Source: Geosiphon pyriformis uo1 (Eukaryota > Fungi > Glomeromycota). Taken from it: a DNA stretch of 64,000 nucleotides. Shown here piece by piece: positions 3,201-63,215 of this stretch. The notes under the pieces are model-generated. The model saw only the letters and a list, made by a program, of their open reading frames with translations. It ran no database searches and had not been told where the DNA came from. Numbering within the stretch: position 1 is the first letter of the stretch; every line of letters starts with the position of its first letter. Both the position numbers and the translations under genes were made by a program. Location: contig JAAOMT010000597.1 of assembly GCA_016748015.1 (NCBI GenBank), positions 571,176-635,175 of the forward strand, in the 5' to 3' direction.

Positions 3201-4961
3201 TGGGCTCCCTTGGATCTTTTGCAGTTTCCTGTTAGGTTGCATGTCAGTCCTGTAAACAATTTTCTGGTTGGTATGGTTAGGATTTTTTTGCATGATGGAC
3301 TCTCTTTGGTGAACCACCTGCCTAGTGCTTTCCGTAGCCCTGGTGTTTTTTCTATGTCGTCTGTTCTGGATGGTTTTCTTTATTATGATTTTGTTTGTTT
3401 TTTGAAACGTTTTGGTGTTGTTTTTGCAGATAGGTTGCTTGATAAGAAAGATTATGTAATGGATTGAAAAACTTTCTATCAGTGAAAAAGGCTTGATCTG
3501 AGGAGGCCTGTTCCCTTTTGGTTTGGTCTGACCAGTAAGTTTTTGGTTGATGGTAGTATTCTGCTATCTGGTTCTTTTTGGTCTGTTGGGTGTTCTGGTT
3601 TGAACATTTTTGACTCTGAGGAATTTTCTAAGATGCAGAGTTGTCTACATGAGTTGTGGTCTAGTTCTTTTGAAGTTTTTATGGATGGTTTGCTGGTGAA
3701 TACTGGGTCTGGTGATGTTGCTGACGGCACAGCTGTTTACTTTTTTTCTGTGGATCTTAGTATTAGTGTGGGTATTTCTGGGCTATTGTCATCTACTTTG
3801 GCCAAGTTGCAGGCTGTTATGTTGGCATTGGAATGTGTTCCATCTTCTAGTATGGTGGCATTGCATTTTGACAGCCAAGCTGTCATCAATGCTTGTGTGT
3901 CTGAGATGTCTTTTGCTGTGCCTGATTTTTGTGTTCCATGTTGGGTGGAGAGGTGTTATATTTTCAATCTTAAAAAAGAAAAAGATCTTAGTGTGAATTG
4001 GGTTAAAGTTAAGGGACATTCTGGAGTTTATGGTAATATTAGAGCTGATTTTGCTGTTGGTGCTGCTATTTGTTCTCAGTTTTTTATGTCTGTGGAAGTA
4101 CAGAAATGTTTTTTGAAGGCTGATGGCATGGTTTTGTTTGGCAATATTTGTCATTTTGCTAGGGACTTACATAAGTCTGTCTGTCGTGCTTGCTGGGAAG
4201 CTGGTCCTAACTGTGATGTGATTCCAGGTAAGCTGGTGGGGTGTGTGAACTGGACAGCTACCTCAAGAGTGTGGCATCTTGATTCACATATGCTTGCTGG
4301 TTTTACTAGTCAAAAGTCTTCTGGTCTGTGGTTGTATCTGATGAAAGCTGTTTACCGCCACCTACCAGTGGCAGTTCAGAAGAGGTTATATAACAAAGGG
4401 TATCCTGGTGTGCTTTGCTTACTGTGTGGTGAGGTAGAGTTGCCTGATCATGTTCTTTTATGCATTTTGGATGCTAGCATTTGGGAGGAGATTTTGGCTG
4501 GAGCTTTTACTTTGTGGGTCTCCCTGTTGAGTCCTTGTTTTTTGATATCTTCTGTCACTTTGATGTTTCTTAATAGTTGTTCTTCAGATGTTGGTCTTTA
4601 CTTGGTTTTGTGCAAGGGTTTTGTAATGTCAGACTGGTGTCTTGAGGCCATTGATGCTTTCAAGAATAAGAAGAGGACTGCTGGTATTGTCATTGATTTT
4701 GTTAGGGGTGTGGTAGAGTTGCATTATACTAAAGTCTAGTTGATTAGGACTAAGCATAGGGTGGATATAGAGAGAGCTGGTTTGGTTAAAGATGGTGGGT
4801 TGGTTTTTGGTCTGCCTTGTTGTGCAGCTTCTGCTTTGTCAGATAGTGTGGTTAGATTACTTGGTATTTTGGAGTCTTTCATTGTTAATTTTGGCTGTCG
4901 TCGGACTTGTCTGTTCTTTTCTGGTTTGGATTTTAACCTGCAGGTTGTTATAGGTGTATAG
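271..4961 (+). pseudogene. LINE copy 1 ORF2 (APE endonuclease-RT-RNase H-CCHC), disrupted
   Basis: ATG at 271 (MSNLVWKFVMCNV); collinear ORF fragments broken by stops mostly at former Trp/Gln/Arg codons and a frameshift near 1665. Confidence 0.93.
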
Positions 4962-9779: not shown

Positions 9780-11050
9780 TTATAATGTATCATATAATTG
9801 AATAGTGATAGTTTTATTTTCTATCTTATATAATAGTTATTTCTAAATTCTTGCTTCTGGATTGATGTTAACTCTTTGTGGTTAGTGTACACATCAAACT
9901 TTTAACTCAAATATTCCTTTTATTTAATAACAGCCTAATAAATAGCCAAATGTTTTAATGCCAGAGTTCTATAGTTCTTTTCAGTTGAGCTTAAGCTTTA
10001 ACTGACATATGCTACTAGATGTTTTTTTTTATTTGATTTTTTTTGTAATAATATGGCTCCTAATACTTGATTTAATATATCAGTGGTAATAATAAATAAT
10101 TTGCTGTAATCTGGATAGATTAATACTGGTGCTTAGATAAGTTTTTTTCTTAATATGTTAAAAGCTTTTTGTTCAGTTTCAGTCTATTTATATTTTACAT
10201 TTTTTGCTTGGAACTAATAAAGTAGTTAAGCCAGTTTAGAAAAGTTTTGGATAAAATAACAATAATATCTAGCAAATTCCAAAAATGTTCTTAATTTTAT
10301 AAGATTTGTTAATACTAGAAAGTTCTTGACTATCTTAATCTTATCTGAATTTATTTTGATGCTGTCTTTACTTATAATATGTCCCAAAAACTTGAGTTCT
10401 GTTTTGTTAAAAAAACACTTGTTTGCATTTAATTTTAACTCAGCTTTTCTTAATTTTTTGAATATTTGTTGGAAATAGTAGAGATGATTGTTAAATGTTT
10501 TTGAGAATACATTAGTATTATTCAAGTAGAGTACTATTAATTTCTATAGTAATCCAGTATAGATGATTTCCATAAGTCATTGAAAAATAGCTAAAGCATT
10601 TATTAAGCTGAAAGACATAATATTAAATTCAAAGTTCTTTTCTCTGGTTGTAAATGCTGTCTTCTCTTTATTAGCTGGACTCATGACTACTTGTCAGTAA
10701 CTACTGTTTAGATCCAATGTTGAAAACCATTTTTTTTTTCAAATGCATCAAATAGTTTTTGAATTTGTAAAATTAGATAGCTGTTTTTATAAGTAATATT
10801 GTTGAGTTTTTTGTAATTTACACAAAAACAGATTTTTTTATTTTTCTTTTGGACAAGTATTACTGATAATAACTATGAACTTATTGATAGTTGAATTAAT
10901 CTGTTGTCTAACATTCTGTTAATTTTTTGTTAAATAATTTTATGGCTTGTTAGTAGTACTCAGTATGTTTGTTGTTTGATTGGCATAGCATTTCCAGTTT
11001 TAATTTGATGCCAGATAATATCAGTTCTGCCAAATTTGTTTTCACTGGCA
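9780..11050 (-). pseudogene. Gypsy-1 reverse transcriptase and RNase H (degenerate)
   Basis: ORF 10226-10525 plus upstream WFSTLDLNSSY*Q and KTAFTT; RNase H VAYVS*SLS and VYTNH. Confidence 0.85.
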
Positions 11051-17154: not shown

Positions 17155-20100
17155 CTATGCACTTATCAAAACACTAACCCTATAAACAGCACCAGACAAA
17201 AACAAGAACCTACTCCTAAAACTGAAACCGACATCAAGAGAATTTAGCACACCAATAAGGTAGACCGTGCCAGCTGAGAGAGGCAGGGCACCCACACCAA
17301 GAGCACCGACCACAACAACATCATCACCAATCAAACCATTCCTCTCCATGTCAGATCTGAACTAAGTCCTAAAGAGCCAGAGGTTTGTCCTATAATTCTC
17401 AGCCAAATGATGGACGAAATCTACCACCACAATGACTGCTTTCTTCTTGCCACCAAGAGAAGCAGTAGTCTCATCCATCCAACTCTTGAGAACAAATCTC
17501 TTGCAAAAAACTGAATACAATTTAACATTAGACACCCCCAGAGAGAGATCTTGCAGTACAAAAGACGGCGACAGTAGATTAGGACCCATCAGAGTCCTTC
17601 ACAAACCACCAAAATCACCCAAAATATCTGATCGCACAAAAGCATCCTTAACACAAGTAAAACCATAATCAGGGAGTTCCACATTACCACAAAACAGACA
17701 AGATACACCAGGATAATCCTTATTATACAACCTTTTTTGAACAGCAACAGGCAACCTGAAATGAACAGCTTTTATAAAGTACATACGAAGAGCAGTAGTG
17801 GCTCAACACGTACTTTCAGAGAGCATATGAGAGTCAGGGTGCCAAACTAGAGCAGTACTATTCCAATTGACAACCAGACCAAACAAACAAGACACAATCC
17901 CTTGGCCGGAACCCACCTCCAACTGAAACTTGCAAATAGAACGAAAAATGTCACGTACAAAATGGCGGGCATTACTGGAAATTGGCTTGCCATCAGCAAC
18001 CACATATCTACAATTAATCCTGGCAGAGAGAGAGATCCCAGAATGCACAGCCTGTTTAGCAAGAACATTAGCCAAAACATTACCAGCGATGCCAGCATGA
18101 CCTTTGATCTTAATCCAGCGAACAGTCAGATCTTTGAATTTAATCAAATTAACCACATGGCACCTTTCTATCCAGCAACTATTGCGACAATCCGGCTGTA
18201 ACAGACCCAATTCAGCCACACATGCATCAATAGCCGCTTGATTATCCATGTGCAAAGTCACTAAAACAGAGACAGGAACGCACTCCAGAGCCAAGGCAAC
18301 AGCCTGTAATTCAGCCAGGGTCAAAGACAGCACACCATGTACCTCCACTCCTAAATCTTTGTTCAAGCCAAGAAAATAAACAGCAGCACCACACACCACC
18401 TGAAACATACCCAAATTTCTAAGAGAACTGTCAGTATAAACATCAATCTCATTAGCCCACAATCCATGAATTTCCTCATAAATGTCAGCAAAAGATGTCG
18501 AATCCAAAACACTAGCACAGACAGAAGCTAAACCCGCAGGAGGGGGAGCATACAAACAATTATTCAAGTAAGCAGAGGCCTTCAAAAACCATAAAGGCAT
18601 GGGACCTCTAGAACCAAGTCTTTTCCATCAGCAAAACATATGCCAACTAACAATAGAACCATTTTTGTCCAGAAGTTGGTCATCATATGCCACACCAGCA
18701 ATTTTTAAGGAGCAAACCACACTGAAATACAAGGGATCACCCAATACTAATGACATTGGAAAATGGCCAGGAGAGCGAAAGGCACAGGAAAGCCTGTTAT
18801 CCAAAGACAGCTTGTTGTCAAGGAATATATGAACCACACCCACTAGAAAATTGTTTGAAGTGTTCACTCTTAGCTTAACAGAATATTGCAGAGGATTCAA
18901 CAGAGCCCAGCACAAAACCTGCAAATCCAAAATTTGATGTTCAAACAGTCAGCCAAGAATTCCAGAAGAATTCGCAAACTGCACAATGGAAGCTGTCTTG
19001 TATTCAGCCTGCAACTGTTCAAAAGATTTCAGCCCATAAAGAGAGGGGTGGTGCAACATCTCATTGAAAAAATCTCTCGGCAAATTGGCTTTCGACTTAA
19101 GACCCCTCCTAATTAGAACGTCCCATTTTAGACAAACAGCTTTGGAAACAAAACTAAACTGCATTCGATAACTGACTATGGGCTGCAAAACAGCTGAAAC
19201 CAGATAAGAGAATTGTTTATCAGAGACAGCCTTCTGGAGAACCATATTTGAGAAGAACTTAATATCTGAATTGGCTTTGGTAAGACTCGGCTTAGACAAA
19301 CCATTGGTGAACAAAAAAATACCCAAATATCGATGACTCACACCAAGATTGGCAACAGTGATAGCCTGGCCATTGATGGATAAAACAGAAACCCCCACTC
19401 TTTTGTTGATAGAAATGGCAACCGTCTTCTTGTTGTTTATGTTAATGTTATTGATAAAGAAAAACTTGCTGGCCACATTAAGAATGTGCTGTGTAGAGGC
19501 TTGCCCATTTCCCACCCAAATAGTGTTATCGACAAAGGCACCAGCTGCAAAAAAAGAGGTCATACCCCCACTAGTCTCAATCCTTCCAGTCTTCGACACA
19601 AAGTTCAAATTGATCCGATAACCACACAAATGATCTTGTCTTGCAACTTCACATAACAAAGGGTCATAAAAAATTCTCCATAGAAGAGATGAGAAAACTT
19701 CACCCTAAACCATCAAGAACTTTGTATCCATCAGAAAGGCCAAAATCTGTCATGACTCTGTTGAAGTGACTGTTGTGAATGTTGCCAAAAAACTTGATAA
19801 ACTTGCTGCACATTTTGATATGGCATAAACTAGCTTCTAAATGAGACCAACCAACAGAGTCATATGCTTTGTGCATGTCTTGAAGAACTAACCAAAGTTC
19901 GCAGCCTTTTTCCAAAGCATCCTCCACAATTGAACCCACAGCTGAAATTGGTGACTGAGTAGAAGTGCCTTTGAGGACAGAAAAGTTGTTACCACGGAAG
20001 ACATCAAACCTACTACAAGCAAGAGAGATCCTGTCTGAGAGAACTTTTGACAGAATCTTCCTGGCCGTCTTAATCAATGCAATAGGTCATGTATTCGACA

Positions 20101-21836
20101 AAACACCATCCCAATCATAAGGCTAAAGAATCATGGACACCCAGACCTCTTTCCAATGGACCGGAACATTACTAAAACGCAAACAAGAGTTCAGCAAAGA
20201 CAACAAACACTCCAAAACCAAACAGCCAGTGTGTTTCCAAAGTTCATTGGTAATACCAGACAAACCAGCAGCTTTGCCATTAGGAAGATTGCTTATAACC
20301 GAAGACATCTTACACATGGTAATATCACACATAACCAGACTGAAGGTGCTATCATTAACATGAACCAAAAGGGCATATTGTTGTGCTCAGGGATCAGACA
20401 AGGCAGGAAGAGCATTCCGCTTTCTGGTTCAATTAATTATGATGTCATTAACTTTAAGCCTCATTTCGTCAGGTTCTAAAATAAGAGAATCACCAACAAC
20501 CAAATAGTCTAGAATGACTTTGTGAAAGAGCCGCTCCAAGATGCTCCAAATCATCTCATCTTTGTCCATTTCGAACTTTCCCATATGCTTATCAATTGCA
20601 TCTCTGATAGCAGATTTTTTGGCCACCTCAGATTCACAATATTTTGGACTTTCTATATTGTTTTCTAACCTTTGAAAGATGACTTATCAAGCCAGCAGAA
20701 CCCACACCATCCCTGATCATACTAAAAACTTTGGAAGCTTTGGAAGGGTCAACCTTAAGCCAAATGTCAGCCAGACGATCAAAGCCCAAAGTATCATCCT
20801 ATCTCAGCACTTTCAATAACTTGGCAACCAAAAGCTCCAACCTGAAAAATTTAGAAAAGAGTTTATTCTTAGCACAATCAAATTCACTATACTAATGTCT
20901 CGAAAAATTTTTTTCAGCAGAAACAGTCATGGCATCAGCTAGCATCCCCCACATTCCATCCAAGTTGCCACCATCCTCAGCCATCTTGAACCTATCCAGA
21001 GAACCCAAAAGCACACACTCAGAGAGGTCCTTAAAATGTGCCCATTTTTTTTCATCAGCATTCTTAATCTTAAACTTCTAGTGATCTTTATTAGCATGCT
21101 TGCAGATGCTGTTTAAACAAGTATCCAGAAGACCATCCAACCCAATAGACATTAACACAGCCAAGTAATCCATGTCAAAAAATTCCAAGACAGAACTAAC
21201 ATTACGATCCACAACCACTGAAATCAAAGAGTTACTAACTAGAATGTAATCCAAAACCTTGCTAACGCCTCTTGAATTGTTCCAAGTAGAAATCCTAGCT
21301 AAAGAGTGACCACCAAAAACATTAACTAAACCCAAACCTAAACATTTCCTAAGACTTGCCCCCTTGACTGAATTGTCTTCATTGAAGTCCCCATCTAAAA
21401 CAACAAAAGAACTCCTGTTGACAGTATCAGCAATGAATGAATTAATAACAGAAGCCTAAGCAAAACGGTCACCACCAGACACACAGACATAAAGCCCAAT
21501 GACAGACACAGAAAGCTTGTTCTTGAACAAAAGGCAAATTGAAAAAACCCTGCCCTTTACCTTCTCAACTTTGAAAACATGACGAGCCAGAGAATCATTC
21601 ACAAAAATAGCCACACCAGCCCCACGAAACCCAACATCCAGACCAGACATAAAAACCTGGACACTCTCAAACCTTTTCATGATCCATGGTTGTAAACCGG
21701 AACACAACTTGGTTTCTGTAACAATCGAGATCAAACTACCAGATTCCTTATGCCAGTGATAAATGTCCTCCTGCTTTGCAGGATTGTTCATTCTCCTAAC
21801 ATTACATGTGGCAATTTTCCAAATAAAACTGGTCAT
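17155..21836 (-). pseudogene. LINE copy 2 ORF2 (APE-RT-RNase H-CCHC), disrupted
   Basis: MTSFIWKIATCNVR, ETKL, LQDMHKAYDSV, AFVDNT, YTDSSL, AELQA, WIKIKGHAG, CLFCGNVE. Confidence 0.93.
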
Positions 21837-24652
21837 TGTGATGAAGAGATAACTAAAGAACCCGAGCCAGCACATAACTGATCCAACTTAGCCAAAATCA
21901 AACCAATGGAGATGTCGAGGACAACCAGCTTTGATTCCAGACCACCAACTTTGGAAGTTAGGACTTTGGAACTACTCAGACCCAATAGCGAACTGGTAAC
22001 ACCTGGAGAGAAAGAAGTAGGCTGGATAAAAGGATCATCAACTGCCATGTCAAAATCCAAGTCAGAGTTTGCAACCACAAGAGGAACAGAGGTTGGGGAC
22101 TGAGGAACTACCACAGAAGGAGCCAATTGAGAGGAAGGCACCAAGGGTGCCAAACTAATATTGTCAAGACAAGAAAGAATGTTCGAAATTTGTTCAGACA
22201 AAAGCTTTACAGAGCGTTCCAGAAGCACTAAGTGAGCACTCAAAGGAGAATTGACCACAGATAGAGGGGGAAGTACTCCACCCAAACTCAAATCACTGGA
22301 AAGTGGGGAACTAGAACCAGAACCAGCACGAAAACTATGAGAGACTGAAGCAACTGAGACTACTTGAGCCCAAGATTTGCCACCAAAGGCAACAGGACGA
22401 GAGATTGGCACATTTTTTTTTGCATACAATTTGGCCAGCTAGAGATAAGTATCAGAGTTGGTAGGCCTTATAAAAAACTTTGAAGATTTGAAAGCTGATG
22501 CAACCTCAGCATCACATTCCAAGGCAGAATGACCAAACTTCCCACACTATTCATAGCGAACCAAATCCAGCCTAGCCCATGAGAGTTTCACACCACCAAG
22601 GATCGGTTCTGTGTGAAAAGTTGACTCCAAAACCTCATCAGAATCAAAACACACAACAGCACAGTGGACCCTATTACCAGTCTCCAATGACCAATTTATG
22701 ACACAAGTTTTTCCACCAGCCCCTTCAAGAAGATCCCCAAGATTATGAGCAGTAGTTCCCACTGGCAAAGTAAACAAAAGTGCCCTGAACTGGTCCCTAG
22801 ATGCCCAAGTTTCACAGTTGCCTACCACCATAGTCACACGAACCGAGTTTTTACCAATCAGGAAAGACCACCTAACAGCCAAAGACACAGCCTGTTCCAA
22901 TTCGGCGAATTCCACCATAGTCTTTTGCCATAAACCAATTAACTGGATTTTGATCGACTTAATTTCTCCAAACTCGGATACTGTGGCAACAATTATTTCC
23001 TTTGGCATGTCCATGGGAATTTCCTTGATGACTACGGCCCGATCTGAACAAACTCCTTGTCTTTTGAGATCGCTATTTATGATGTTACAGGTGATTATTT
23101 GGGGTCTCAAATTAAATAACAAACCCATAACTTGGTGCTCAATTGATATAATGTTATTGGTAATATCTAAAGATATTGTTATCTGAAGGTTTTGGTTGAG
23201 TCCTTTGTATAATGAACAGAGATTCAATAAGGTTGATAGTGGTTGTATTCTCAAGTTGTTTTCCCAATTTCTTTTTCAGCTTGGTGGCTGGATTTATTCT
23301 GGCAGTCGTGCCCTTCTGGTAAGCTATCCGATAATATATAATTCTACCCTTATTTCTGGGTTTTTTACCAGGCTATCCGTGACGTCAATAACTCAGCACT
23401 TAATCCTTTTAATCAATTTAATGAACAACAAAAGAAAATAAAATAAAATAAAGAAAATAAAAGAAAATAAAGAAATAAGAAAATAAAATAAGAAATAAGT
23501 GTCCTGTCAATAGCTGTGATCAAGAGCTATTGTGCCAGCAGGTTAAGTAGTGGATAATAACATAGATTTGAAGATAATGGATAATTTCATTAATATGAGA
23601 GCAATTTCACTTCAAGTTATAATATTTTATCTTTTGAAGGAAGAGTATTTAATAATTATGATTTTGCGAGTTTAATTAATTCTATGAGTCTAATTGACTC
23701 TGCAAATCAATTGATTCTAAGTCCCCTTGACTAATTTTCTAACTTCTGATACTACTGCTATATATACGTATTTGAGATTCCTCAATTCCTCAATTTTTCA
23801 TGTCAGGAATCCTAGAATTCCTGGAATTCTGCAATTCCTTTGAGAGAAATCCTGGAATTCTGGAATCCTGTGATTCCTTGTGTGAAAATCCTGCAATTCC
23901 TCTGAGAGAAATCCTGGAATTTCACATTTACTACGTCTACCTATGATTGGCTAATTTATATGCTAATATACTTTCTATATTTTATGAGTAACAATGACAA
24001 TCCCTTTTTTTTCGGCCAATGACGCAGCTTTCCTTATGCTCTCCTCAGATGTAAATGTTGATCGGATGATCCCCTCAAATTTTGAGGGGATAGTGGCCCC
24101 CCCAAAACCATTGATTTTTGAAAAAATCTTCCTGATTAATTGAGTTTTTGCCATCACCGATTTGTCTTCAACAGCTGAAAGATTGATATCCAAGGCAAAA
24201 AATTTTTTAGCTGCCACCTCTACAGGAGTTTTGACAATTTTGGGATCAATCTAGATCTTATTCAAAAGAATTTTTTTCATAAGGGGGGGTGAAAGGGGCT
24301 TCACCTCTTCATCTATCTCAAAGTCAGGAGAACCAATAGGAGAACCAAAATTCGCACTAGTATTCACATGTTTAGCCTTAGGAGTATTAACAGCTGATTC
24401 CAAGAGAGAACCATCAAAACCACCAGACATACTGACATTCTTATCATCACTAGAAAGACTTTCTACATTGGAGTATACACTAGCACTAGAACCAGATTTC
24501 AAAAAAATATCTTTTTTATCACCAGAGTGTTTAATATTACCAAGAGAAGTCTTCTTTTTTTGTGAAAAAGAACCACTGGCAGGACCATGAAACACACCCT
24601 TAGAAGCCTTTTTACTAGACATGCCGCCACTAGAAGCAGCCTTTGAATCCAT
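21833..24652 (-). pseudogene. LINE copy 2 ORF1 (RRM-like and CCHC knuckle), split by a solo LTR
   Basis: Removing the LTR and one TSD restores EKKGIVINSDLKRQG; decayed knuckle YE*CGKFGHSALEC near 22510-22555. Confidence 0.92.
23083..23993 (-). mobile_element. Solo LTR (family A), 911 bp
   Basis: TGTTAC...GTAACA termini; perfect 4-bp TSD ATGA at 23079-23082 and 23994-23997. Confidence 0.96.
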
Positions 24653-26095: not shown

Positions 26096-29000
26096 CTATA
26101 CCCTTATATGAACAAAAACCAGTCTCTAATACCCAAGAAAAATGAACATGGAGTATGAAATCTGAAACCTACACCAAACGCTTTAGCAATACCCAGCAAT
26201 CTAACCACACTAGCTAAAAATGACGTAGATAGACCAAAAATTGAGGTAGGAATAGAACTATCACATGAGATCAGCTCATTCTTGTCCATAAAAGCCTGGT
26301 GTTTGGTACGGACCAGCCAAATATTTTCCCTGAATGTGAGACAAAACTCACAAATGAAGCCCACAACTTTCGACATTGCAACCTTAGGATTCCTAAAAAC
26401 AGAAACAAATTCACAATACCAGTTATTGAAAACAAAGCCTTTGCACAAAACCAGACCAACAGCAACATTAGTAACACAGATATGTAACAACTGCAAAATG
26501 CACAAAGAAAACTGAGATAAACCTGAACAAGCCTCCCAAACAGATACATAGACATCCAACAACTGAACATGATCTGCAGCATCAAATGGACAACAAAAAA
26601 CATGGTCGAAAACCTCAATGTCACTACAGAATAAATAAATCACACTGAAATAACATCTATTATACAAATGTTTGCATACAGCAACCAAAAGCTGATAATG
26701 GAGGGCCTTCATAAAGTAAGTATGAAGGCCAGTAGTATGCATATTAGTAAAACCAGCAGCCAAATGAGAATTTATGTGCCATACCATAAAGGACTTTGAC
26801 CAATTGATATTAGCATGCAGACTATTTAGCATGACCAAAAAGCCCAATCCAATCTCCCAGTGTGTACAATGAACAGACCAAAAGACATCCCGAACAAAGT
26901 GTTTAGAAATACCAGAAACTGCAGTATCACCAGCTCTTAAAAATTTTTCACTGATTAAATAAAGCATTTGCCAGGCAGAGAGAGTGGCATTCTTAGCAAG
27001 TGCATCAGTGCACACATTGTCCAAGATGTCTGAATGTCCCCTAACTTTAATCCAATTCACACTTAAATTTTTGCGACAAATAATATTAATAATTTGGCAA
27101 CACTCAATTCAACACCAGTTCCTGAAATCTGAACAAATCAAAATAGATTCCGATTTGCACACATCCAGAACAGCCTGGCTGTTTGAGAATAAGTTGACTG
27201 TCTGAAAAAAAAGAACACACTTAAAAGCTAAAACAATGGCCTGCAGTTCTATCAAAGTGGAAAAAACCAGACCAGACACTTTCACATCCAGACCCAAGTT
27301 AATGTCCAGAAAAAAAACTGCAGCACCAGCCTTTATATCAATAGTACCCAAACCATACAGAGATCCATCCGTATATACAGAAAGACAGACCACATCAATA
27401 GTCAACAGATCATTACAAATAACACTAAAACCATAAGACTGATGAATATCAAAAACAGCACCACTATCTATAAACAAAGAGCACCCAGAAAAAAGAACAT
27501 TACCTTCAAGAAAGTGAATAGAGAGACTAAACCAAAATAGAACTGGGCCACAAAAGTCCAGCTTTTTTCAATGTTTGAAGGTTTTCTAATCAAAAATGCC
27601 ACCATTTCAGTCTCGCAGCTGCTCAACAAAAGTGATTCCATAACATTTGAATAACAAGATACACTTGAAAAAATATGGCTCACCAAAAACCATAAACATA
27701 GGGGTACCACTCCAAAAGTAAAAGACACAGGCCAGAGAGTTGTCCAAAGACAAATCACATCCAGAAAAAATATGAACCATACCAGCCAAAAAGTTATTTG
27801 AAAGGTTTACACCAACATAAGCCAGAAATAACAAAGAGTGACGAGGATGCCAACTAAAAACCTGGAAATCATGAGATCTATGAGAGAATAAATAACCCAA
27901 AATACCAACTGAGTTTGCAAAATTAATAACAGATACCAATTTACATTCAGCTTGAATCTGTTCAAAAGTCTTTAAATTGTACAACAAAAGATGATAAAGC
28001 ATATTATTGGGAAAATCAAATGATAATCCCAACTTTGACTTTAGGCCTTTGCATATCAGAGCATCTCATTTATTACACATACTAATAGGAACAAAACTAA
28101 ACTAAGTTCTGTAGCTGCAAACTGTTTATTCGAAATCACCTTCCTTAAAACAAAATTCACAAAAAACTGAACATCTGAATGAGTTTTAGCCAAGTTAGAC
28201 TTGGACAAACCCTCAGTCAACAAGAAGATATCTAGATAACAATGAGATTTCCCCTTCTTTACAATAGAAATAGGCAACCCACTGATAGTGAGATAGAAAT
28301 TTGTAATCTGACAATTGATAAAAACAGCCACTGTTTTGTTATTATTTATGAAAATGTCATTAAACCTGAAAAATTCACTAGCAACATTAAGCATGTATTG
28401 TATAGCAGTCTGGCTGTTACCAACCCATATTGTATCATCGACAAAAGCACTAGCAACAAGAAATGAAGTCAACTCAGCCTGAGAATCCACCCAGCCAGTC
28501 TTAAAAATAAAATGGGAATTTAATCTGTAACCACAAACATTCTTCTGTCTCTTGACCTCACACAAGAGTGAATTGTAGAATATGTGCCAAAGAAGAGGTG
28601 AGAAGACTTCCCCTTGGTCCAACCCATCATAAACATAATACCCATTAGTCAATCCAAAATCTGTTATCACCCTATTGATGTGACTATTGTAAATGTTACC
28701 AAAGAATCTTATAAATCTGTTACACATCTTGATTTTGACTAGACTTCTTTTGAGATATTCCCAACCAACCAAGTCATAAGCTTTACACATGTTTTGTAAA
28801 ACTAGCCAAGTTTCTTGTTCTTTTCTAAGGCATTCTCAACAACAGAACCAATGGCAAAAATAGGAGATTATGTCATTGTGCCTTTTAAAACTGAGAAGTT
28901 GTCCCCACAGAGAACATCAAAAGCACTACAAGACAAAGAGATCCTGTCTGAAAGAACCTTAGAAAAGATTTTGCAGGCTGTCTTAATCAGAGCAATTGGA

Positions 29001-30748
29001 TGGGTATTCATAAGAACACCCTCCCATTTATACGGTTTAGATATCATTGAAACCCAAGCATCTCTCCAAAGTCAAGGAATCAATTCACTAACCAAACAAG
29101 AATTCAAAAGCACCAAAAGCATATTTAAAATTGACTTGTTGCAATGTTTCTATAATTCATTAGAAATACCAGAAAGGCCAGCAGTCTTCCTATTAGGAAA
29201 GTTCTTGACAACAGCAGACATCTTATTAAGACTAATCAAACATATAACACCAGAGAAAACACCATCAAACACATAATCCAGAGACTGAAATTGGCAAATC
29301 CAATTAGCGGAGAGATCAGATACCACTTTATGTTTTCTGGTCCATCCCACCATAATTTCATTCATCTTAGATTTGACCAAATTAGGCTCCAAAATCAACT
29401 CATCTTCCACAATCAAATGATCCAAAACCATCTTATGAAAAGAACGTTCTAACACACTCCTGATAATATGACCCTTGTCTAATTCAAAACTTTTCATCTT
29501 TTTAGCAATAGTCAGCTTGATATAAGACTTCTCAGTGCACTTGGATTCCAACAACTTTGCAGTGTGGTATAATTTTCTTGTCTTGACAAGCACAGAATGA
29601 ATAAGATTAAAATTAGAACCCAAAAGAAAAAGAAACTTTACCGCTGATGTACCAGTGGAATCGAGCTTGTTCTATGTTTCCAGTAATGCAACAAAATCAC
29701 AACAAAAAATTAAATATGAGGCCCTGACCAGCTTGGAAACCAGCAACTCCAGCTTATAAAACCTGGAAAACTCCTTGGTGAAAACACCATTAAAACTCTT
29801 AAACCATTTCTTCTTAAATGCACTATCAACTGAAAGAACTATGATCTTGTGAATAATGTCCCACATAGCATCTAGATCCAAGAACCTCACAGCAAAATCA
29901 AATGCATCTGAAAACACAACAGCATTAGCAGTTATATTATTCTTGAACTCAAACTATTTTGTCTCATTAGCATTTTTGATGTCAAACTTCCAACAATCTC
30001 TATTCACTTGTTTGTAAAAAGAAATCAAATAAGTATTCAAAAGTCTACCCAACTCTAAAGACACAGAAACAGCCTGGTAATCTGTGTCGAAATGTTTACT
30101 AACATCAGAAATATCATGATAAACAACTGCATTGATTAGATTTGGAGAAATAAACACATAGTCAATGGTTTTTTTGACACCCCTAGAATTTGCCCAAGTG
30201 GGCGTTTTAGCAGCCAAGCTTCTGACCAAAGAATAAACCAGCCCCAGATCTAAACATTTTTTGAAACTAGCACACTTATAAGACCCATTTTCATTAAAGT
30301 CACTGCTGAGGATGATAAAAGAAGTCTTATTAACAGCTTTTGCAATGAGAGAGTTGATTTCACTGGCTTGAAAGAACCAAACTACTGAAAAAGTACTAGC
30401 ATAAAGACCCAAAATAGACACAGAAAGTTTATTTTTGAAAAACAATTTGATATATAGTAGCCAATCAAGCACCTCAGAAATTTTATACACATGTCTTACT
30501 AAAAAAGAATCCATGACAATAACCATGCCAGCATTCAAATAACCAGAATCCAAACCAGAAGTAAACACCCAAACACCATCAAACCTGCCAGCAATCTATG
30601 AACAGACCTTACTCTTCAGCTTCAATTTCATAAAAATAGAAATTAAATTACCCATATCCTTATACCAACAAATGATATTATTCTGTTTTGCTGGATTATT
30701 CATTCTTTTAACATTACACATGACAACTTTCCAAACCAAATCCATCAT
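26096..30748 (-). pseudogene. LINE copy 3 ORF2, disrupted
   Basis: SDFN, TIDY, KAYDLVG, GLDQG, AFVDDT, YTDGSL, WIKVRGHS motifs in ORF fragments. Confidence 0.92.
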
Positions 30749-32535
30749 TAAGAAGAACAAAAAACAGGCACCAGACTAGTATTGTTCAATTTGGCTGAAA
30801 AGCTTATAACTGTAACTGAAAGATTTTTTAAAGTTTCTTTCATTTTCAAAACAACCAAAGAATCAAAAACTGTCACCCCCACTACAGTCTTACCACTAGT
30901 GGCCACACCCGAATCCTCACTCATCACTATATCTGCTTCTTGATTCTGTAATTAAGGAGTCACCAATGGCTAACATCCAGAACTAAGCTGAAAAACCATT
31001 GGCCCAGGTGTGTCCAACCTCTTAGCCAGCTTATTAACATGCTCTGTGAGGCTGGTGAGACTGCACTCAAAAGTGGCAAACCTATCATTTATTACCAAAG
31101 ACACCAGCAGGGTAGGCTTCATCTCTGAAGAAGAGCCATTTTTTGAAGAAACACTCTGACCAGAAAGAGGAGGGAAAGAAAACCCACCAACAACACTAGC
31201 CTATAAAGCACTACCAAAAGCAACCAGCCAAGTGACTGGAGCTAAACATTTGGCATAAATGATCACCAGTTTACTTTTATTGGAATCCAAAAGCATCTAA
31301 TGTGACAACCTACCAGAAGGCAATTTTTTACCAAGACCACAGCCCAAAGAAGTATGATCCAACCTCTTACACTTTGCACATATAGCAGAACCAAGATAAG
31401 ACCAATGAAGATGAGCACCTCTTAACATGAGTGTAGTTTTCATGACAGCATCCAATGATTTGGCTAACTCAAAACAAACAACGGCACATCTGGCCCAAGC
31501 ATACATAACTGGATAACAATTAATCACACACGTTTTCCCACTTACAGAACCAATAAAGTTCCAGATGTCATAAGCATTTGTTCTCACAGGTAGAATATAG
31601 AACAATACTCTGTGAAAATTTTTTTTATCTCATGTAACCTTATCCAAATCTGATTTAGCAATGTGCACTACATTCTTTCTAATTAGAATAGACCATCTAT
31701 CTGCCAAAAGATCAGCCTGAGATTGTTTCTCAAACTCAATAATTGCTTTTTGCCACAGCTCTACCAATTGCATTTTGATCGACTTAATTGCACCAAATTT
31801 GGACAGTACAGCATGCACAGCCTCAGCTGATGTTCCAATCAGAATTTCTTTTATTACCACAGTCCAATCTGAATGACTAGTTGATTTTTTGTAATCAGTG
31901 TTCACCATGATTTTTGCATCAGTAATCTTATTGGTAGCTTTTATCAAACCCAATTCAGAAGTAAATGTTGCTCAGATAATCCCAGAAAATTTTGAGGGAG
32001 TAGAGGCCCTTCTAAAACCATTAATTTTTGAAAATAATTTTTTGATTACAACCAACTTATCCTGAGCAGATTTTTCAACCACATTATCCAAGCTAATATC
32101 CAAAGCAAAAGATTTTCTAACAGAAACTGAGACCAAATTTTTCAAGAGAGGAGGAAGTTCCAAGGAGGCATCCAAGAGAACATCATCATCAACATCAAAA
32201 TTTGAGAAGTTTATCTTCCCTAACGGCTTGGCCAAAGCCTTCTTTGTCTTAACACCCAGCCTTTTAGGCATTTGATCATAATTCTTATTAGCGATAGTGC
32301 TACTTTCATTATAGTCAAAGCTAGTTTTTTTCACTAGACATTCCTTTTTCATATCAATACTCTTAGACTCAGTAGTGTTACCAGTTTTAGAACTCCAAGA
32401 ACAACCACTAGGCACCTTAGTTGTAGTCCTTTTACCACCAACACTCTCTTTTAAAGTGACACCCTTTCTCTTTTTCCTTGACAAAACAGGCCTGAAACCA
32501 CCACCAGAACCAAATTTATTAGCAATCTTCTTCAT
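30745..32535 (-). pseudogene. LINE copy 3 ORF1, disrupted
   Basis: KSFALDI, KINGF..TPSKF, VVIKEI..SIKMQL, knuckle CAKCKRLDHTSLGC. Confidence 0.9.
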
Positions 32536-56000: not shown

Positions 56001-57404
56001 TAAACACTAAAATCTATTATAGAATAGCTAGCAAATACTATTTTTATTTAAAACACAACAAATTTAATAATTAAAGCAGATAAAAGTTCAATTATATTAA
56101 TAATTTATTATTTTTGGTGATAACCATTAGTGTTTAGAATATCATGTTATTAATTTATTAAAAAACTAAATTCGAAAAAGCGGGATCAATTATTTTCAGT
56201 ACAGCTTAAATACTTTATTAATAGTAGACTAAAAATCAAACCAAAGAAACTTACAAAAATTATGGTCTAAATTGCTTACAAATTATTATTAAAAAGTAAA
56301 AAATCAATGCTATAAAAGCTGAATACATTGACAATTTATTTAATAATATTTTCGACAAAGTATTAATTTTTATTTCAAATTGTTTTTCTAATTGAATGTA
56401 GTTTGCAAAGTCTTTTTCGAAAGGTAAATAGGATTAAATAGAAGATAAAATTTTGTTATAATTATTGCATATTAAAAATATATGCTTTTTTTAATCTTGA
56501 TTTTAATATTATAATTTGATTTTCAATATATTTTGCAGATTTTATATTGGTTTGGTTTTTTTTTAAAATTCCAAATTATTATTTAAATAAGTATAAAACT
56601 ATTTGCAATATTTTAAACTTGTTGTTTTAGTAATTATCACTTTAATTGGTATATTAATTTTAGGAAAGCATTAAATGTTACTGAAAGTATTTTTATTACT
56701 AAATATTTTTAGAAGTGATTGCTGGTATTTGAATGTTTATTAGAAGTGTTTTGTTGTTTTCTTCTAATAACTGAAAAGTTACTTTTGTTTTTAATTGCTG
56801 TATTTGTAATGTCTGAATTTTTTGTAGATTGTTTTATAGTATTGTTATTTGTATACTAGTAATTTTTTATTTGTCATTGAGATAACTATTTCGTTTCTGT
56901 TTTAAAACCGCTGTTTAAAAGTTCACAAATAGTCCAGCTACTCAATATAATTTTAAGAAGTCATATTTTGTGTGAAGGTCTTTAGATTTAATAATTGATT
57001 TATAAAAATAAAGCAATAAACAAAATTGTTTTTATTATGTTTTTGTTATATATATTAATTTAAAGATTTTAAAGCCAGTTATTAAGTATAACAATATTAA
57101 ACATTATTCAAAATATTATTAAAATATTATATTTACATTAAAAAAAATGATTTAGACGTATTTTAATTTTTGTAAATACCAATTCGGGTGCCAATAAACT
57201 ATTTGTGGGAATTGCATTTAGACACCTTACTCAAAAACTGAATATTCGACAAATTTTAATGAAAAACTATTTAAAACCAATAAAGTTAACCTTCACGAAG
57301 AAATATGAAAAAATGAATCATCTTCAATTTTGAAATCAATTAATTTCTTACTAAAAATTGCTTGTTATTGATATCTGCACAAGTTAAATCTTTTAATTCA
57401 TCAA

Positions 57405-59246
57405 TTAAGTGATATTTTTGTTGGCTAAATTTTTATCAGGGTCGCCAAAATATTCAAACTCAATCTCTTCAAGCGAACAATTTGTAGCAATTATGTCACT
57501 TTCTTGATCTTTGCCCATATCTAAAAGGATATTATATAATGTTACATAGCAATGGTGCATAGTTGGCCTTTTTTCAGGATCCTGATGCCACGCTTGAGCC
57601 ATTAATTCTAGATATTTCGGCGGGATATGTGGAACTTTGTTGCTAGGACGTTCACCCCCTTTGATTTTCTCTGGAATTTGCCTATTTTCCACATCACCAA
57701 AGGGTAATCTTTGAGCAGCAATTTCCCATAGAACAATTGCATAACTGAATTTTTTAAAAATGGGTTGAATTCTTTTCTCCTTTGAATTATAAGGAAAAAA
57801 AACTTATGAATTTACCTATATACATCAGAAGCCTTAGTGTAACGAGCAGAACGATTCACAATTCTTTCGGGAGATACCCACCTACATTTGAAAATTTTAT
57901 AAGATTTTCAAACATATAAAAACTTTGAAATCAATATACGCACCTAATAATTGAGAGGAGCTCCAAGATTGGCTTCCTAAAAATATCTTCTTCTTTGTGA
58001 GCATGTGCAAAATTCGCAAGTTTGGCATTCAAGTTTTCATCGAGCAAGATATTGTGACTAATTTTTTTAAAGGTGGAATGCAAGCGTTAATCCAGAGAAA
58101 TCAAAATGCCAAAATTTTGTTTTATAAGATAAAATTAAAATGAATACCTTCTCACATCATGATGAACTATGTTGGAGAAATGACAAAAAGTCAGTGCCCC
58201 TGCAATTTGATACGCAATCTTTGCTTTTTGGTTCCAACTCAAAATATGGGCTTCGCTTTCAATTTCAAAGAAAGATTTCATATCCCCATTTTTGACCCAC
58301 TCGGTAATAGTATACCGCTCGCCATCTCGCTCGACTATACCATAACTTTATTGAAAGAAAATAAGTTGGAGCTTTAAATCAATTTGTTGGAATCAAAATA
58401 TCTGTCTGCTCACAATTTCAAGATCCCTTGGGCTTTTTCTAATTGCCTCCAAATCGCAATTTCTCGCCAAAAATCCTCATCATTGCCTTTGCCTGCTTTT
58501 CCAACATGCTTTTCCGCTACTTGTCCATATGTTCGGTGAAGTCTTTTTTTTATATGGTATTTGCTGCCGCGAACGACGCGAAATTTTTCTTCAGGGTTAT
58601 CGAAAATATCCTCAATTGGAATCTTGCTTTGACCAAGCGCTTCACTCAGTGGGGCATTGTCCTGAATAGCAGTCATACGAGCTGAGGCAACTTGGAGATC
58701 GTGAGTGGGCTTTCTGCGTGGGATTTTACGCTCGTTTTTGGGTGAATCCTTTTTTGAGGGGACAATCTCAGCAACCGCATCATCCAATTTTATTTTTAAT
58801 TCAAGGTACCTTTTAGCAATCTAAAGTCAAGTCAAAGCAATGCATCAAAGATCGATCTATTTGGATAAACAATTTTTTTTACAAAGTTGTTTCGAAATCT
58901 TATATACGTCGTTAGCATCCCATAGCTTCATTTTCACAGTCGGATCATCCTTTTGCTGCTTAATAAATTCAAGAATTGCTTTTAACGAATTGTTGTAATT
59001 TTCACTTGGCTCTAGACCTGATATTTTTTCTTCAGATAAAGACACTTCATTTGCCAATTTTTTACAAGTCGTCTTATTATATTCTGCCTTATTTTCCGCA
59101 GTTAGGATGGCCTTTACCAAGTCAGGTGTTTTTTGAGTGACTGGATTGCATTATTTTATTGGTAAGTTGTTATTCAAGGAAGAAAATTGGGTACTTAATA
59201 CTCTCTAAAATATACCATCGTAAACCGAGTGATTTTGTTGAAACAT
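57405..59246 (-). CDS. MLKL-like protein A: N-terminal helical bundle, linker and TKL-type pseudokinase, 462 aa; exons 59246-59216, 59140-58908, 58820-58414, 58345-58148, 58057-57944, 57881-57816, 57744-57405
   Basis: Six GT-AG introns give an open 1389-nt CDS; NKTTCKKLA and IAKRYLELKIKLDDA in the N-domain; VAEK, REIAIW, HHDVRSHNILL, AKLANFA, WVSPE, SDVYSYAIVLWEI, AWHQDPEKRP; exon 1 is the least certain. Confidence 0.85.
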
Positions 59247-59605
59247 TTGGACGCTTTATTTTAAGTACTGCGAACGAATTTTCCAAGGAAATAAAGGCGA
59301 AATTGGTAATTTTTTCGATTTGATATTTTGTCTGCGAAAAGACGGTTCTTTTATCAGATGGCTGTTACCTTTCTAAGAAACGTAGGATAGAACGTCAGAA
59401 GATAGGATCAATGATTCCGATTTATGTGAAACCGCGCCATGTTCTATGTGAAACTTTCAAGTCCGTACTCCAAATTGTCGATCAAACAAGTTGGAACCCT
59501 AATAGCTCACTGGCAATACAATGATGGTTAAAAAAAACCAAGCCATTTACCGAATCATTTCTTTCGAAACTACATTTTAGCCTGTTAATCACATTTTTTC
59601 AGCAA
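59247..59605. promoter_or_regulatory. Putative bidirectional promoter of the MLKL-like pair (359 bp)
   Basis: Lies between the divergent ATGs; CpG retained; central direct repeat TATGTGAAAC at 59423-59432 and 59445-59454. Confidence 0.55.
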
Positions 59606-61961
59606 ATGAGCGATTACCTTAAAACCAGCCTTACTATTACTCGGCAAGCATTCCAACTTGCAGGTTGGTTTAACAAGACTCAAATATTGCCTTTTGAGAA
59701 GATTTGAACAAGAACGACACTTTTGGTTACAAAGATATTTCAAATGTAAAATGATAGGAATTGGGGCTGGAGAAGTCATTGTCGATATTTTAAAAGATAT
59801 TTTAGAGGCGAAAGAAAAGATCAAACAGAATAAGAAAAACTGTAAAAGATTAATAAAAGTTGTTCAAACTTGTCAAGAGGAAATAAATAATAGAATTACG
59901 CCTGAAAATTTCGGGCAGTACAATCCCCAAAGTTATATTGACGCTCTTAAGGCTATTCGAGATTTTCTTGATTTGCGCAAATATTGAAAGTGAATGAGGT
60001 AGTTTTATAAATTCATCAGCAGTATATAAATTTTCTAAAGTTTAATTTTGAATTTCACTGAATTATAAGGTCACCACCAAGATTACTGAGTTAAAGGAAG
60101 ATTTAGATGAGGCTGTTGACAGGCTTACCCTTAACGTGGTTCTCCAAATTGGTGAGGATCAGAAAGAAATGAACAGGAAAATGATTCAAATGATTGCTAT
60201 CCATGATGATGCCCCACTTGATGACCAAATTTTGAATGAAATAACCATCTCGGATGCGCATATTGCCGATGATCCGAAGGAACAGTTTGCACGTCGTCTT
60301 TTGGGCAGTCGAAGTCATGTAGTAAAAAGGTATTACGCAGAAGAAAATGTACCAGTTGCAGAAAAACAAATCGCCAAGAGAGTTGCAGACCAAGAAAAAG
60401 ACTTCTTGAAAGAAATTGCCTTATGGCGGTTGTTGAACAACGTGACAGGCATTTTGAGACTGTATGTTCCCAATTATCTTATTACTTACGCAAGACAGAT
60501 GAATTATTTTCGAAGTAGTTTCAGCATCAAAATTGTTGATTTTAATATAATTATGGTTTCGTTGAACGCAACGGTGAAAGGTATATTATTACGGAATGGG
60601 CAAAAAATGGTGATTTGGAAAAGTATTTGGCAGATCCAAATAATACTCTGACATGGATTGAAAAAGTCAAAATAGGCGGTCAAATTGCAAATGCATTATA
60701 CTTCTGCCATGTTCAAGATGTGCTTCACCATGACGTTCGAAGGTTTGTAATGTTTCAAAAAAATTTAGACTTTTGAACTGAGTCTAAAAACAGCATTTCT
60801 CTTTAAATTAAAGCCACAACATTTTATTGGATGAAGACCTAAATGCCAAACTAACTAATTTCGAAAATTCTCGGAAAGAAACTGATGATTCGAAATCTAT
60901 ATCTGATACATTCACTGAAGCCAGGTAAAGGCTCCAATATTTTTATAATTTCAATATGATATTAAGGATCTTGTATTTCAGAATTTTATCAACCAAATTT
61001 TTTTCTCACTGCAGGTGGACAGCCCCAGAGAAACTAGCAGATAGTAAAACTCGCTATTCAAAAGCATGCGATGCATATAGGTATATCAAATAAATCCTAA
61101 TGAGTTATTATTAATTTCGCTCTCTAATCAATATCTTGTTCATGTTGATTTTAAATCCCATATTCAAGCTTTGCAATTGTCCTTTGGGAACTGGCTACTC
61201 AACAAATACCCTATGGAAATATTGAAAGGCCCTACTTGATAGGAAAAATTCTAGATGGGGAAAGACCCAACTCTGATATCCCCAACATGCCACCACAATA
61301 TAAGGAATTGATGATTCAAGGCTGGTCTTCAAATTATTGGAAACGGCCTAAAATGAGCTATGCCTTCTGTAATCTAGAACGACTCTTCAAAGAGATGCAG
61401 ATACAAAATACAAAAATATCTACTTCCGATATCAGTCTTGACCAAATTTCAACAAACTTCCTGTTAAGTCTTTATAATCCTGATGAAGAATCAGATTCTC
61501 CTATACCAAACATTGCCACCGCCATCTGTCACTACAAAGCCGAAAAATTCAAAGAGGCCTGGGAAATTTTTAAATATTTTCTGGAGCAAGGAAATGTGAC
61601 GGCAAAATTCTACGCTGGTTATTACTTTTTTGAGGGTAAAGATCCGGTTCCAAAAAATAAACGACGAGCCTTGGAGTTATGGCGCCAAGCTGCTGACTGT
61701 GGTGATAGAGATTCTCAATACCAGTTTTCTCTTACTTGCATGACACTACAGACAACGAGAGAACAAAAGGAATTGGCATCAAAATACTTCAAGATGGCAC
61801 TCAAGAAAGATCATCCTGGTGCTCTGTACAATTACGGATTGGATCTTTTCAAGAAAAAAAAATTCACTGAAAGTGAGAAATACTTAAAGAGAGCTAGTGA
61901 GATGGGGCATAAAAACGCGTTATCAAAATTGGATGAATTAAAAAGGCAGCATGACTTTTAA
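59606..61961 (+). pseudogene. MLKL-like protein B: helical bundle, pseudokinase and Sel1 repeats, 617 aa if repaired; exons 59606-59663, 59758-59998, 60070-60461, 60551-60742, 60814-60924, 61015-61080, 61169-61961; apparently disrupted or mis-assembled
   Basis: Same intron phases as gene A; NKKNCKRLI, VAEK, HHDVRSHNILL, AKLTNFE, WTAPE; Sel1 motifs AKFYAGYYFFEG..ALELWRQAADCG, YFKMALKKDHPGALYNYG, YLKRASEMGH; exon 2 is 1 nt short near 59986 and the intron 3 acceptor reads AA at 60549-60550. Confidence 0.75.
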
Positions 61962-63215
61962 ACCCAATCGTTAAAAGGAATACTTGAAGATAGCATGATT
62001 TTTCATAAACTTTTGTTTGGATTCAGAAATCATCAACCAAAATAGAAAGCTGAAAGTTGATTATACATTTTGTTGCACGAAATTTCGAAAATGTGATATA
62101 TTAAAATAGACTCCAAAAGGAAAGTATTCGATCAAAATTAGATATTAAACTAAATTTCGCACTTCTGAAGGAGTGAGGACTGTTTAAATAAAATTTTTAT
62201 ATTAGAATATTATTAGTTTTAAAAATCATATTAAGATATAATTATCAATGAGGTGAATGCAACTAATAGTTTAAAGTGCAATCAGCTTTTAATGGGATTT
62301 CTTAATGTTATCTATTACTATAACATGAAAATCCACTTTCGTTTTATAGAAAAAATTTCCAGTAACCATAATTACATGAAAAACTTGAGTGCACAAATGT
62401 TCATCATACATATTCAGAAAGCTGTTTAGCTCAAGAAAATAAACCAAGTTCTATTTTCCAGCAAATTATATTAAATTGATGTTTTGAAAATTTACCAAGC
62501 ATAAGAAAATGGTCAAAATATAAAATATCTAATTTTTTATGTATTTAATCCTGTTTTGGCTTTATTTACTTCTCAAACTACGTATAAATAAAATTTCACT
62601 AAATTTGTTTCTTTTCATGTAAAACAAGAAGGTAATTTAAGAATTTATGTGAGTTGAATACTTGGTTTTTATCAGCTCTTAAAATGATTTCAAATAATAG
62701 AAATATTATGTGTAACTACACACTGTTTAATTTTTAAGACTTTGACTTTGTTTAAAATCCTGGATACCAAAATTTAGTTAAAATTTTATAATAAAATACC
62801 ATATCTATCAGTATAAAATATTTATTCCTTGAGATAAAAATTTTTTAATAAATCCATTTGAGTTACGTCATATTACTTGAATAAATAGTGATCATATGAA
62901 TGTTTATTTTGTTTAACATGTTTCCATTTTGGTCTATTTCTGAATTTTTGCTTATCTAAACGTGTGAATGAAAAAATCATCTTTATTCATTTCACTAAAT
63001 TGGTAAGGTTCGCTTATTGTATGTCTAGAGCAGTTGTTCTATAGCCATTTTAATCAACCAAATAGGATCAAAAAGAAAGCTTCAGTGCCGCTGGTTACAC
63101 TAAATTTTAGAGTAAATCATTTATAAACGTTGGTTCTTCCACATCTATTTTATTTTCCCTAGTCAATTCTGGTTTAACGAGTGCCTTATAATAGGAAATT
63201 ACTTCGCTAAATATC

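Follow-up and report, generated by a model that had tools for sequence, protein, structure and literature searches.

Positions 57405-61961 of a 64,000-nt stretch of the Geosiphon pyriformis genome (the window, contig JAAOMT010000597.1; positions are counted from its first nucleotide) hold two paralogous genes, gene A (KAG9290417.1) and gene B (KAG9290418.1), which lie head to head on opposite strands. All exons of gene A match their counterparts in gene B, at 34-71% identity exon by exon, and the two divergent paralogues described in the initial annotation are thus real. Both strands were read over 57000-62400, and no further copy of either gene was found within the 64,000-nt window. The same annotation interpreted the genes as a dedicated sensor and executioner of cell death. 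The evidence presented below makes it likely that this is instead an ordinary locus of its family, with an intact gene A that lacks Sel1 repeats and a transcribed but decaying gene B, which are not sister copies and do not form a dedicated pair.

Transcripts and the probable shared promoter region

The transcript evidence comes from one public run, kept as contigs and labelled 'probably DNA'. These contigs are nevertheless complementary DNA (cDNA), since GT-AG introns are skipped in them and the contigs of both genes terminate in the same 12-nt adaptor at their 5' ends, at 59388 for gene A and 59706 for gene B. An origin of the spliced contigs from retrocopies was considered and rejected, because the assembly has a single locus for each gene; the shared 5' adaptor also speaks against it. 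The cDNA is independent of the assembly, as it carries one extra T at 59309, in a T-run of the 5' untranslated region of gene A. This difference may be a homopolymer error or a polymorphism. For gene B, no base differs between cDNA and genome.

The two cDNA 5' ends are separated by 317 bp (59389-59705). The distance of 359 bp given previously is correct as the ATG-to-ATG distance in the model of that time, and it does not describe the interval between the transcripts. Depth of cDNA is zero over 59393-59553, and the interval includes the ancestral exon 1 of gene B (59606-59663). Genes A and B are transcribed from this shared region, a probable common promoter, as had been proposed. Spliced contigs of both genes occur in the same run, although contigs are not able to show co-regulation.

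Gene A is intact and expressed

The transcript of gene A extends from 59388 to 57405 on the reverse strand. Its coding sequence (CDS) consists of 7 exons (59246-59216, 59140-58908, 58820-58414, 58345-58148, 58057-57944, 57881-57816, and 57744-57405), separated by introns that are all GT-AG, with phases 1,0,2,2,2,2, and its 1389 nt encode 462 amino acids. Six of the six junctions are seen in cDNA contigs, together with the adaptor-tagged 5' end, and there is no upstream AUG in the 5' region of the cDNA. The model is identical to the database protein KAG9290417.1 (P0002); a look-up with its exact protein sequence found no entry. Coverage by cDNA ends at about 57557, leaving the last ~150 nt of the CDS (57405-57557) and the 3' end uncovered; in this part only the open reading frame (ORF) indicates where translation stops and that no other intron follows. 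No Sel1 sequence is present in the CDS, and a relaxed tblastn search for a Sel1 remnant downstream was also negative, so that gene A does stop after the kinase, as initially described. Gene A is also without the extra N-terminal helix that other family members carry. It is an intact and expressed gene whose product has only the basic MLKL parts, namely a bundle, a linker, and a predicted pseudokinase.

Gene B is transcribed but broken

Gene B was previously assigned the same 7-exon structure and the same intron phases as gene A. This holds for gene A in all six cDNA junctions. Gene B fits the layout by homology only; its exons add up to 1844 nt, a length not divisible by 3, and several lesions are visible. 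Its transcript (59706-61961, forward strand) comprises in the cDNA the exons 59706-59998, 60070-60580, 60667-60742, 60814-60924, 61015-61080, and 61169 to at least 61940. The cDNA begins only at 59706; the contig contains neither the proposed exon 1 (59606-59663) nor intron 1, over which cDNA depth is zero. The frame of exon 2 runs into an in-frame TGA at 59985-59987, and the frame leading into exon 3 is not open before 59972. The short stretch 59972-59987 is the only one in which both frames are open, and here the cDNA agrees with the genome. Programmed frameshifting was considered at this point and rejected on inspection by eye; a -1 shift would be required, and no slippery site of the type X_XXY_YYZ is present in 59972-59987.

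The second lesion concerns the acceptor of exon 4, which has been lost and reads AA at 60549-60550. Intron 2 is spliced in the cDNA from the donor GT at 59999, while the ancestral intron 3 (60462-60550) is retained, with one contig piece running unbroken from 60068 to 60576. This retention fits the loss of the acceptor. A new GT-AG intron of 86 nt (60581-60666; cDNA joint 60576|60663, with the cut at +4) has appeared within the ancestral exon 4. It restores the downstream frame but deletes the homologous coding segment for beta5, the hinge, and alpha-D. The last three introns are found in the cDNA as predicted.

Reading frames were listed from the cDNA-defined exons chained together. ORF1 (59751-59987, forward strand) begins at the first in-frame AUG at 59751, spans 78 codons corresponding to bundle helices 1-3, and ends at the TGA. 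The other frame stays open over 527 codons, between 59972 and 61961. Its first Met lies at 60169, and unrelated residues replace in it the homologous segment of beta4-beta5, hinge, and alpha-D. Sel1/TPR-like repeats are present in the last exon at 61497-61958 (PF08238, 40.6 bits, E 3.2e-10, plus matches to TPR_27 and TPR_2), in agreement with the repeats originally noted for gene B. To get around both lesions, the annotated protein KAG9290418.1 (P0005, 560 aa) leaves out the greater part of exon 2 and takes an acceptor at 60580. Both of these rescue joints are absent from the cDNA contigs; the annotation is a workaround of the gene predictor without cDNA support. Neither the genome nor the cDNA of gene B contains an intact bundle-kinase-Sel1 protein.

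The N-terminal domain is a divergent MLKL-type bundle

The N-terminal domain of gene A (residues ~8-113; 58746-59225, reverse strand, across introns 1 and 2) is a divergent four-helix bundle of MLKL_N type. The comparison that we regard as decisive for homology, at the level of sequence profiles, is that of the family N-domain with MLKL_N domains of the same genome that score above the Pfam cut-off; hhalign relates them at 96.4% (E 1.2e-9, 127 columns). The best two PDB hits of the N-domain profile are mouse and human MLKL (E 0.018 and 0.058). Against Pfam MLKL_N itself (PF22215, cut-off 27 bits), two paralogues fall just below the threshold with 24.4 and 22.3 bits, exon 2 of gene B gives a weak match (E 0.0024, profile positions 3-41), and a scan with gene A alone gave none. 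A word-based search with the N-domain of protein P0001 returned only P0001 itself.

Structural models point in the same direction. The AlphaFold2 (AF2) models, with a modest predicted local distance difference test score (pLDDT) of 57 and 67, contain four helices, the third and fourth of which are separated by a short additional one; in gene A the four main helices lie at residues 7-28, 33-50, 57-72, and 86-107. Foldseek against the PDB gave no match at E<=0.001. Its top row was MLKL, at E 0.83, and usable structure scores came only from re-alignment with VIA. By this means the gene A model matches the MLKL executioner domain 6zz1 with Z 9.7 and a root-mean-square deviation (rmsd) of 2.9 A over 103 residues. 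For the P0001 model, MLKL ranked second of 48,161 chains in a search independent of Foldseek (Z 9.8, rmsd 2.5 A, 113 residues, 24% identity). The profile and model comparisons together support the MLKL-type bundles postulated for both N-termini, and the N-domain and helix-4 peptides that had been quoted in this connection were found in the sequence.

The kinase fold and the linker

The kinase-fold domain of gene A (residues 183-417; 57543-58538, reverse strand; PF07714, E 1e-43) is a predicted pseudokinase, and the pseudokinase folds claimed earlier for both genes are consistent with the motifs observed. In alignment to Src, HRD is changed to HHD, and DFG is changed to NFA in gene A and NFE in gene B, so that the DFG Asp is missing in both; there is also no GxGxxG loop in either. 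The VAEK Lys, the alpha-C Glu, the HxD Asp, and the Asn of the catalytic loop are kept. By sequence the domain is closest to Src/Lck, not to the MLKL pseudokinase. Between bundle and kinase, in the brace region, pLDDT is <50 for residues 111-156 of the gene A model, and only short helices are formed there. The PDB profile alignment extends into the brace region of mouse MLKL, with an E of only 0.018.

Family, phylogeny, and neighbourhood

Nine copies at three loci make up the Geosiphon subfamily: the present pair, four copies on C387, and three on C714. All seven copies outside the window carry a Sel1 tail, and in the tightest divergent pair that they form, 2.9 kb separate the two genes, both of which have Sel1. 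Between two family genes facing away from each other at 2.9 kb, an orphan Sel1-like fragment was observed (G000:C387:49019-49264, reverse strand), which is probably the remnant of another copy. Four more Geosiphon genes are canonical in that their MLKL_N exceeds the Pfam cut-off (C623:205139-205537, C588:96019-96366, C571:123834-124115, and C554:322126-322371). In the C623 and C588 genes (MLKL_N 48.5 and 35.8 bits), MLKL_N, kinase fold, and Sel1 are all recognized by Pfam, and the C554 gene has a kinase and a Sel1 tail by protein similarity to P0001. The Sel1 tail is thus found in three of the four; the fourth, on C571, lay outside the Sel1 scan. All four stand alone within the 5-6 kb that were fetched around each. 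None of the 11 other copies (7 of the subfamily and 4 canonical) has a tight divergent partner from the family. The bundle-kinase-Sel1 single chain is the default of this family, and such genes stand alone.

According to the supermatrix in which exons were aligned separately, gene A is nearest to a copy on C714 (C714:1133k, 56% identity) and has 41% identity to gene B. A tree constrained to unite the two genes in one clade is worse by 8.3 log-likelihood units (lnL; approximately unbiased (AU) test, p 0.029). Gene B has the longest Geosiphon branch in the tree. As judged from these alignments, A and B are not sister copies, and the proposal of inverted duplicates is not sustained.

When a profile of exon 3 was compared with 1.84 billion representatives, just 20 proteins matched at E<=1e-3, and all named relatives are from Glomeromycotina: Geosiphon, Rhizophagus clarus, Funneliformis, Gigaspora, Racocetra, and Dentiscutata. 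MLKL-family homologues with Sel1 have been described as exclusive to Glomeromycotina among early-diverging fungi (PMC8778642), and kinase and Sel1 families are highly expanded in arbuscular mycorrhizal (AM) fungi (PMC8647823). The bundle-kinase-Sel1 architecture was already known for Glomeromycotina (PMC8778642) and is not new here. In R. clarus, a divergent gene lies 432 bp from the relative P0007 (BLAL01000197.1, 5567-9568). The two were considered as a second pair and rejected, as the neighbour is a 1188-aa TPR-kinase of another, unrelated family. A divergent pair that recurs among relatives, as the initial annotation would lead one to expect, was therefore seen neither in the 11 other Geosiphon copies nor in R. 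clarus. In P0007, a single gap (10373-10436) between tblastn matches suggests one intron, compared with six in the Geosiphon genes.

Interpretation of the locus

The likely ordinary family locus would consist of two members of a small Geosiphon subfamily, within a family expanded in Glomeromycotina and composed of an MLKL_N bundle, a degenerate kinase of tyrosine kinase-like (TKL) type, and Sel1 repeats. Gene B would be a decaying copy that is still transcribed, having lost exon 1 from its mRNA, acquired a frame break after bundle helix 3, and lost an acceptor; from the first AUG its mRNA would give only a 78-residue N-terminal fragment. By analogy with MLKL and HeLo-type bundles, the members of the family probably have a regulated membrane-targeting role as single-chain proteins, in cell death or in non-self responses, in which the kinase fold and Sel1 repeats may restrain or sense and the bundle may execute.

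The original model, in which gene A is a minimal executioner and gene B a Sel1-bearing sensor of a two-gene cell-death module on one bidirectional promoter, accounts for the head-to-head arrangement with cDNA 5' ends 317 bp apart, for the transcription of both genes in one run, for the complementary architectures with Sel1 on B but not on A, and for the MLKL_N-type bundles of the family. It is very unlikely, and it fails because one partner is broken in both genome and mRNA (frame break, lost acceptor, and missing first exon), the two genes are not sister duplicates, a single chain with Sel1 is the norm, and the arrangement does not recur, with no tight pair among 11 other family genes and an unrelated TPR-kinase as the sole divergent neighbour found in R. 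clarus. Less improbable, though still unlikely, is that gene B keeps a function in changed shape: a minor isoform resembling the annotated 560-aa model might be made, or the long downstream frame with brace, remodelled kinase, and Sel1 might be used, and A and B would then be merely co-regulated neighbours. The 527 open codons, the new intron that restores the frame, the in-frame alternative acceptor at 60579-60580 used by the annotation, and the good contig depth of the transcript would fit this. However, neither annotated rescue joint was seen in the cDNA contigs, translation from the first AUG of the family frame ends after 78 codons, the long frame has its next in-frame Met 418 nt beyond that AUG, and its product would be without bundle helices 1-3 and the homologous hinge region of the kinase; gene B also has the longest branch in the tree.

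That the defects of gene B are assembly errors in an intact gene is scarcely credible. The one-base difference in the T-run at 59309 indicates that homopolymer errors or polymorphisms do occur, but cDNA and genome agree without gaps across the frame break, the retention of the ancestral intron agrees with the lost acceptor, and two independent lesions and a shifted 5' end would have to be explained. Equally slight is the probability of a gene fission in progress, in which the mRNA of gene B would give a free three-helix fragment from ORF1 and a re-initiated protein of brace, remodelled kinase, and Sel1, and relatives with Sel1 would act in trans as regulators of gene A, which has none of its own. 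If true, this would be a naturally split MLKL-like sensor/executioner system on one promoter.

Several points weigh against the ordinary family locus with a decaying gene B. The open downstream frame and the frame-restoring intron imply that either the damage to gene B is recent or its downstream part is still used. There is a single cDNA run, and contigs drop minor isoforms, so a rarer in-frame isoform, for example the annotated one, may exist; the contig depth of gene B is not below that of gene A. Designed bundles reach similar Z-scores, so that the fold alone is not discriminating, and the functional role of the family rests on analogy with MLKL and HeLo-type bundles.

The locus provides no evidence for a new paired immune module. 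The bundle-kinase-Sel1 family of AM-type fungi is real and lineage-restricted, and it offers a reasonable starting point in the search for regulated cell death or non-self responses of coenocytic fungi. Gene A, as a naturally Sel1-less, intact, and expressed member, offers a convenient minimal construct for studying bundle toxicity and restraint by the kinase fold. Gene B documents the decay of a family member that continues to be transcribed.

Comparison with known systems

The closest likeness is to the MLKL homologues with Sel1 of Glomeromycotina (TCDB 1.A.105, PMC8778642) and to the canonical C623 and C588 genes, with which the subfamily of the window shares the order of MLKL_N, TKL-type kinase fold, and C-terminal Sel1. 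The lineage is the same, and hhalign relates the N-domains at 96.4%. Compared with this canonical family, the subfamily of the window is divergent, with the best MLKL_N score of 24.4 bits below the cut-off and a 7-exon structure; A is without Sel1, and B is broken.

Animal MLKL (PDB 6zz1, 6ux8, 4btf) shares the N-terminal four-helix bundle, the linker, and a kinase fold without the DFG Asp, as well as a conserved Lys/Cys/Leu stretch at the turn between helices 1 and 2, and it gives the best PDB profile and structure matches. In contrast to animal MLKL, the kinase is nearest to Src/Lck and keeps the HxD Asp and the catalytic-loop Asn, and members of the Geosiphon family add an extra N-terminal helix and Sel1 repeats. 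To our knowledge, no activator of RIPK3 type is known for the Geosiphon family.

Plant MLKL (AtMLKL3, 6ka4) and the HeLo and RPW8-CC bundles (NRG1.1, 7l7v) resemble the domain in bundle fold (Z 8.3-8.7), and plant MLKL also has the layout of bundle plus pseudokinase. They differ in that identity is low (12%), the Sel1 array takes the place of the serine-rich region of plants, and no link to nucleotide-binding leucine-rich repeat receptors (NLRs) was seen. The head-to-head NLR pairs of plants (RGA4/RGA5, RRS1/RPS4) are likewise divergent with a short shared promoter. At the present locus, however, neither gene encodes an NLR, one partner is broken, the layout is not conserved among paralogues, and there is no integrated decoy.

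Other regions of the window

Apart from the two genes, three blocks of the window (376-4739, 17803-23254, and 26104-32535) are richer in GC (36-41%) and contain ORFs of 150-400 aa. These are presumably other genes, unrelated to the kinase family.

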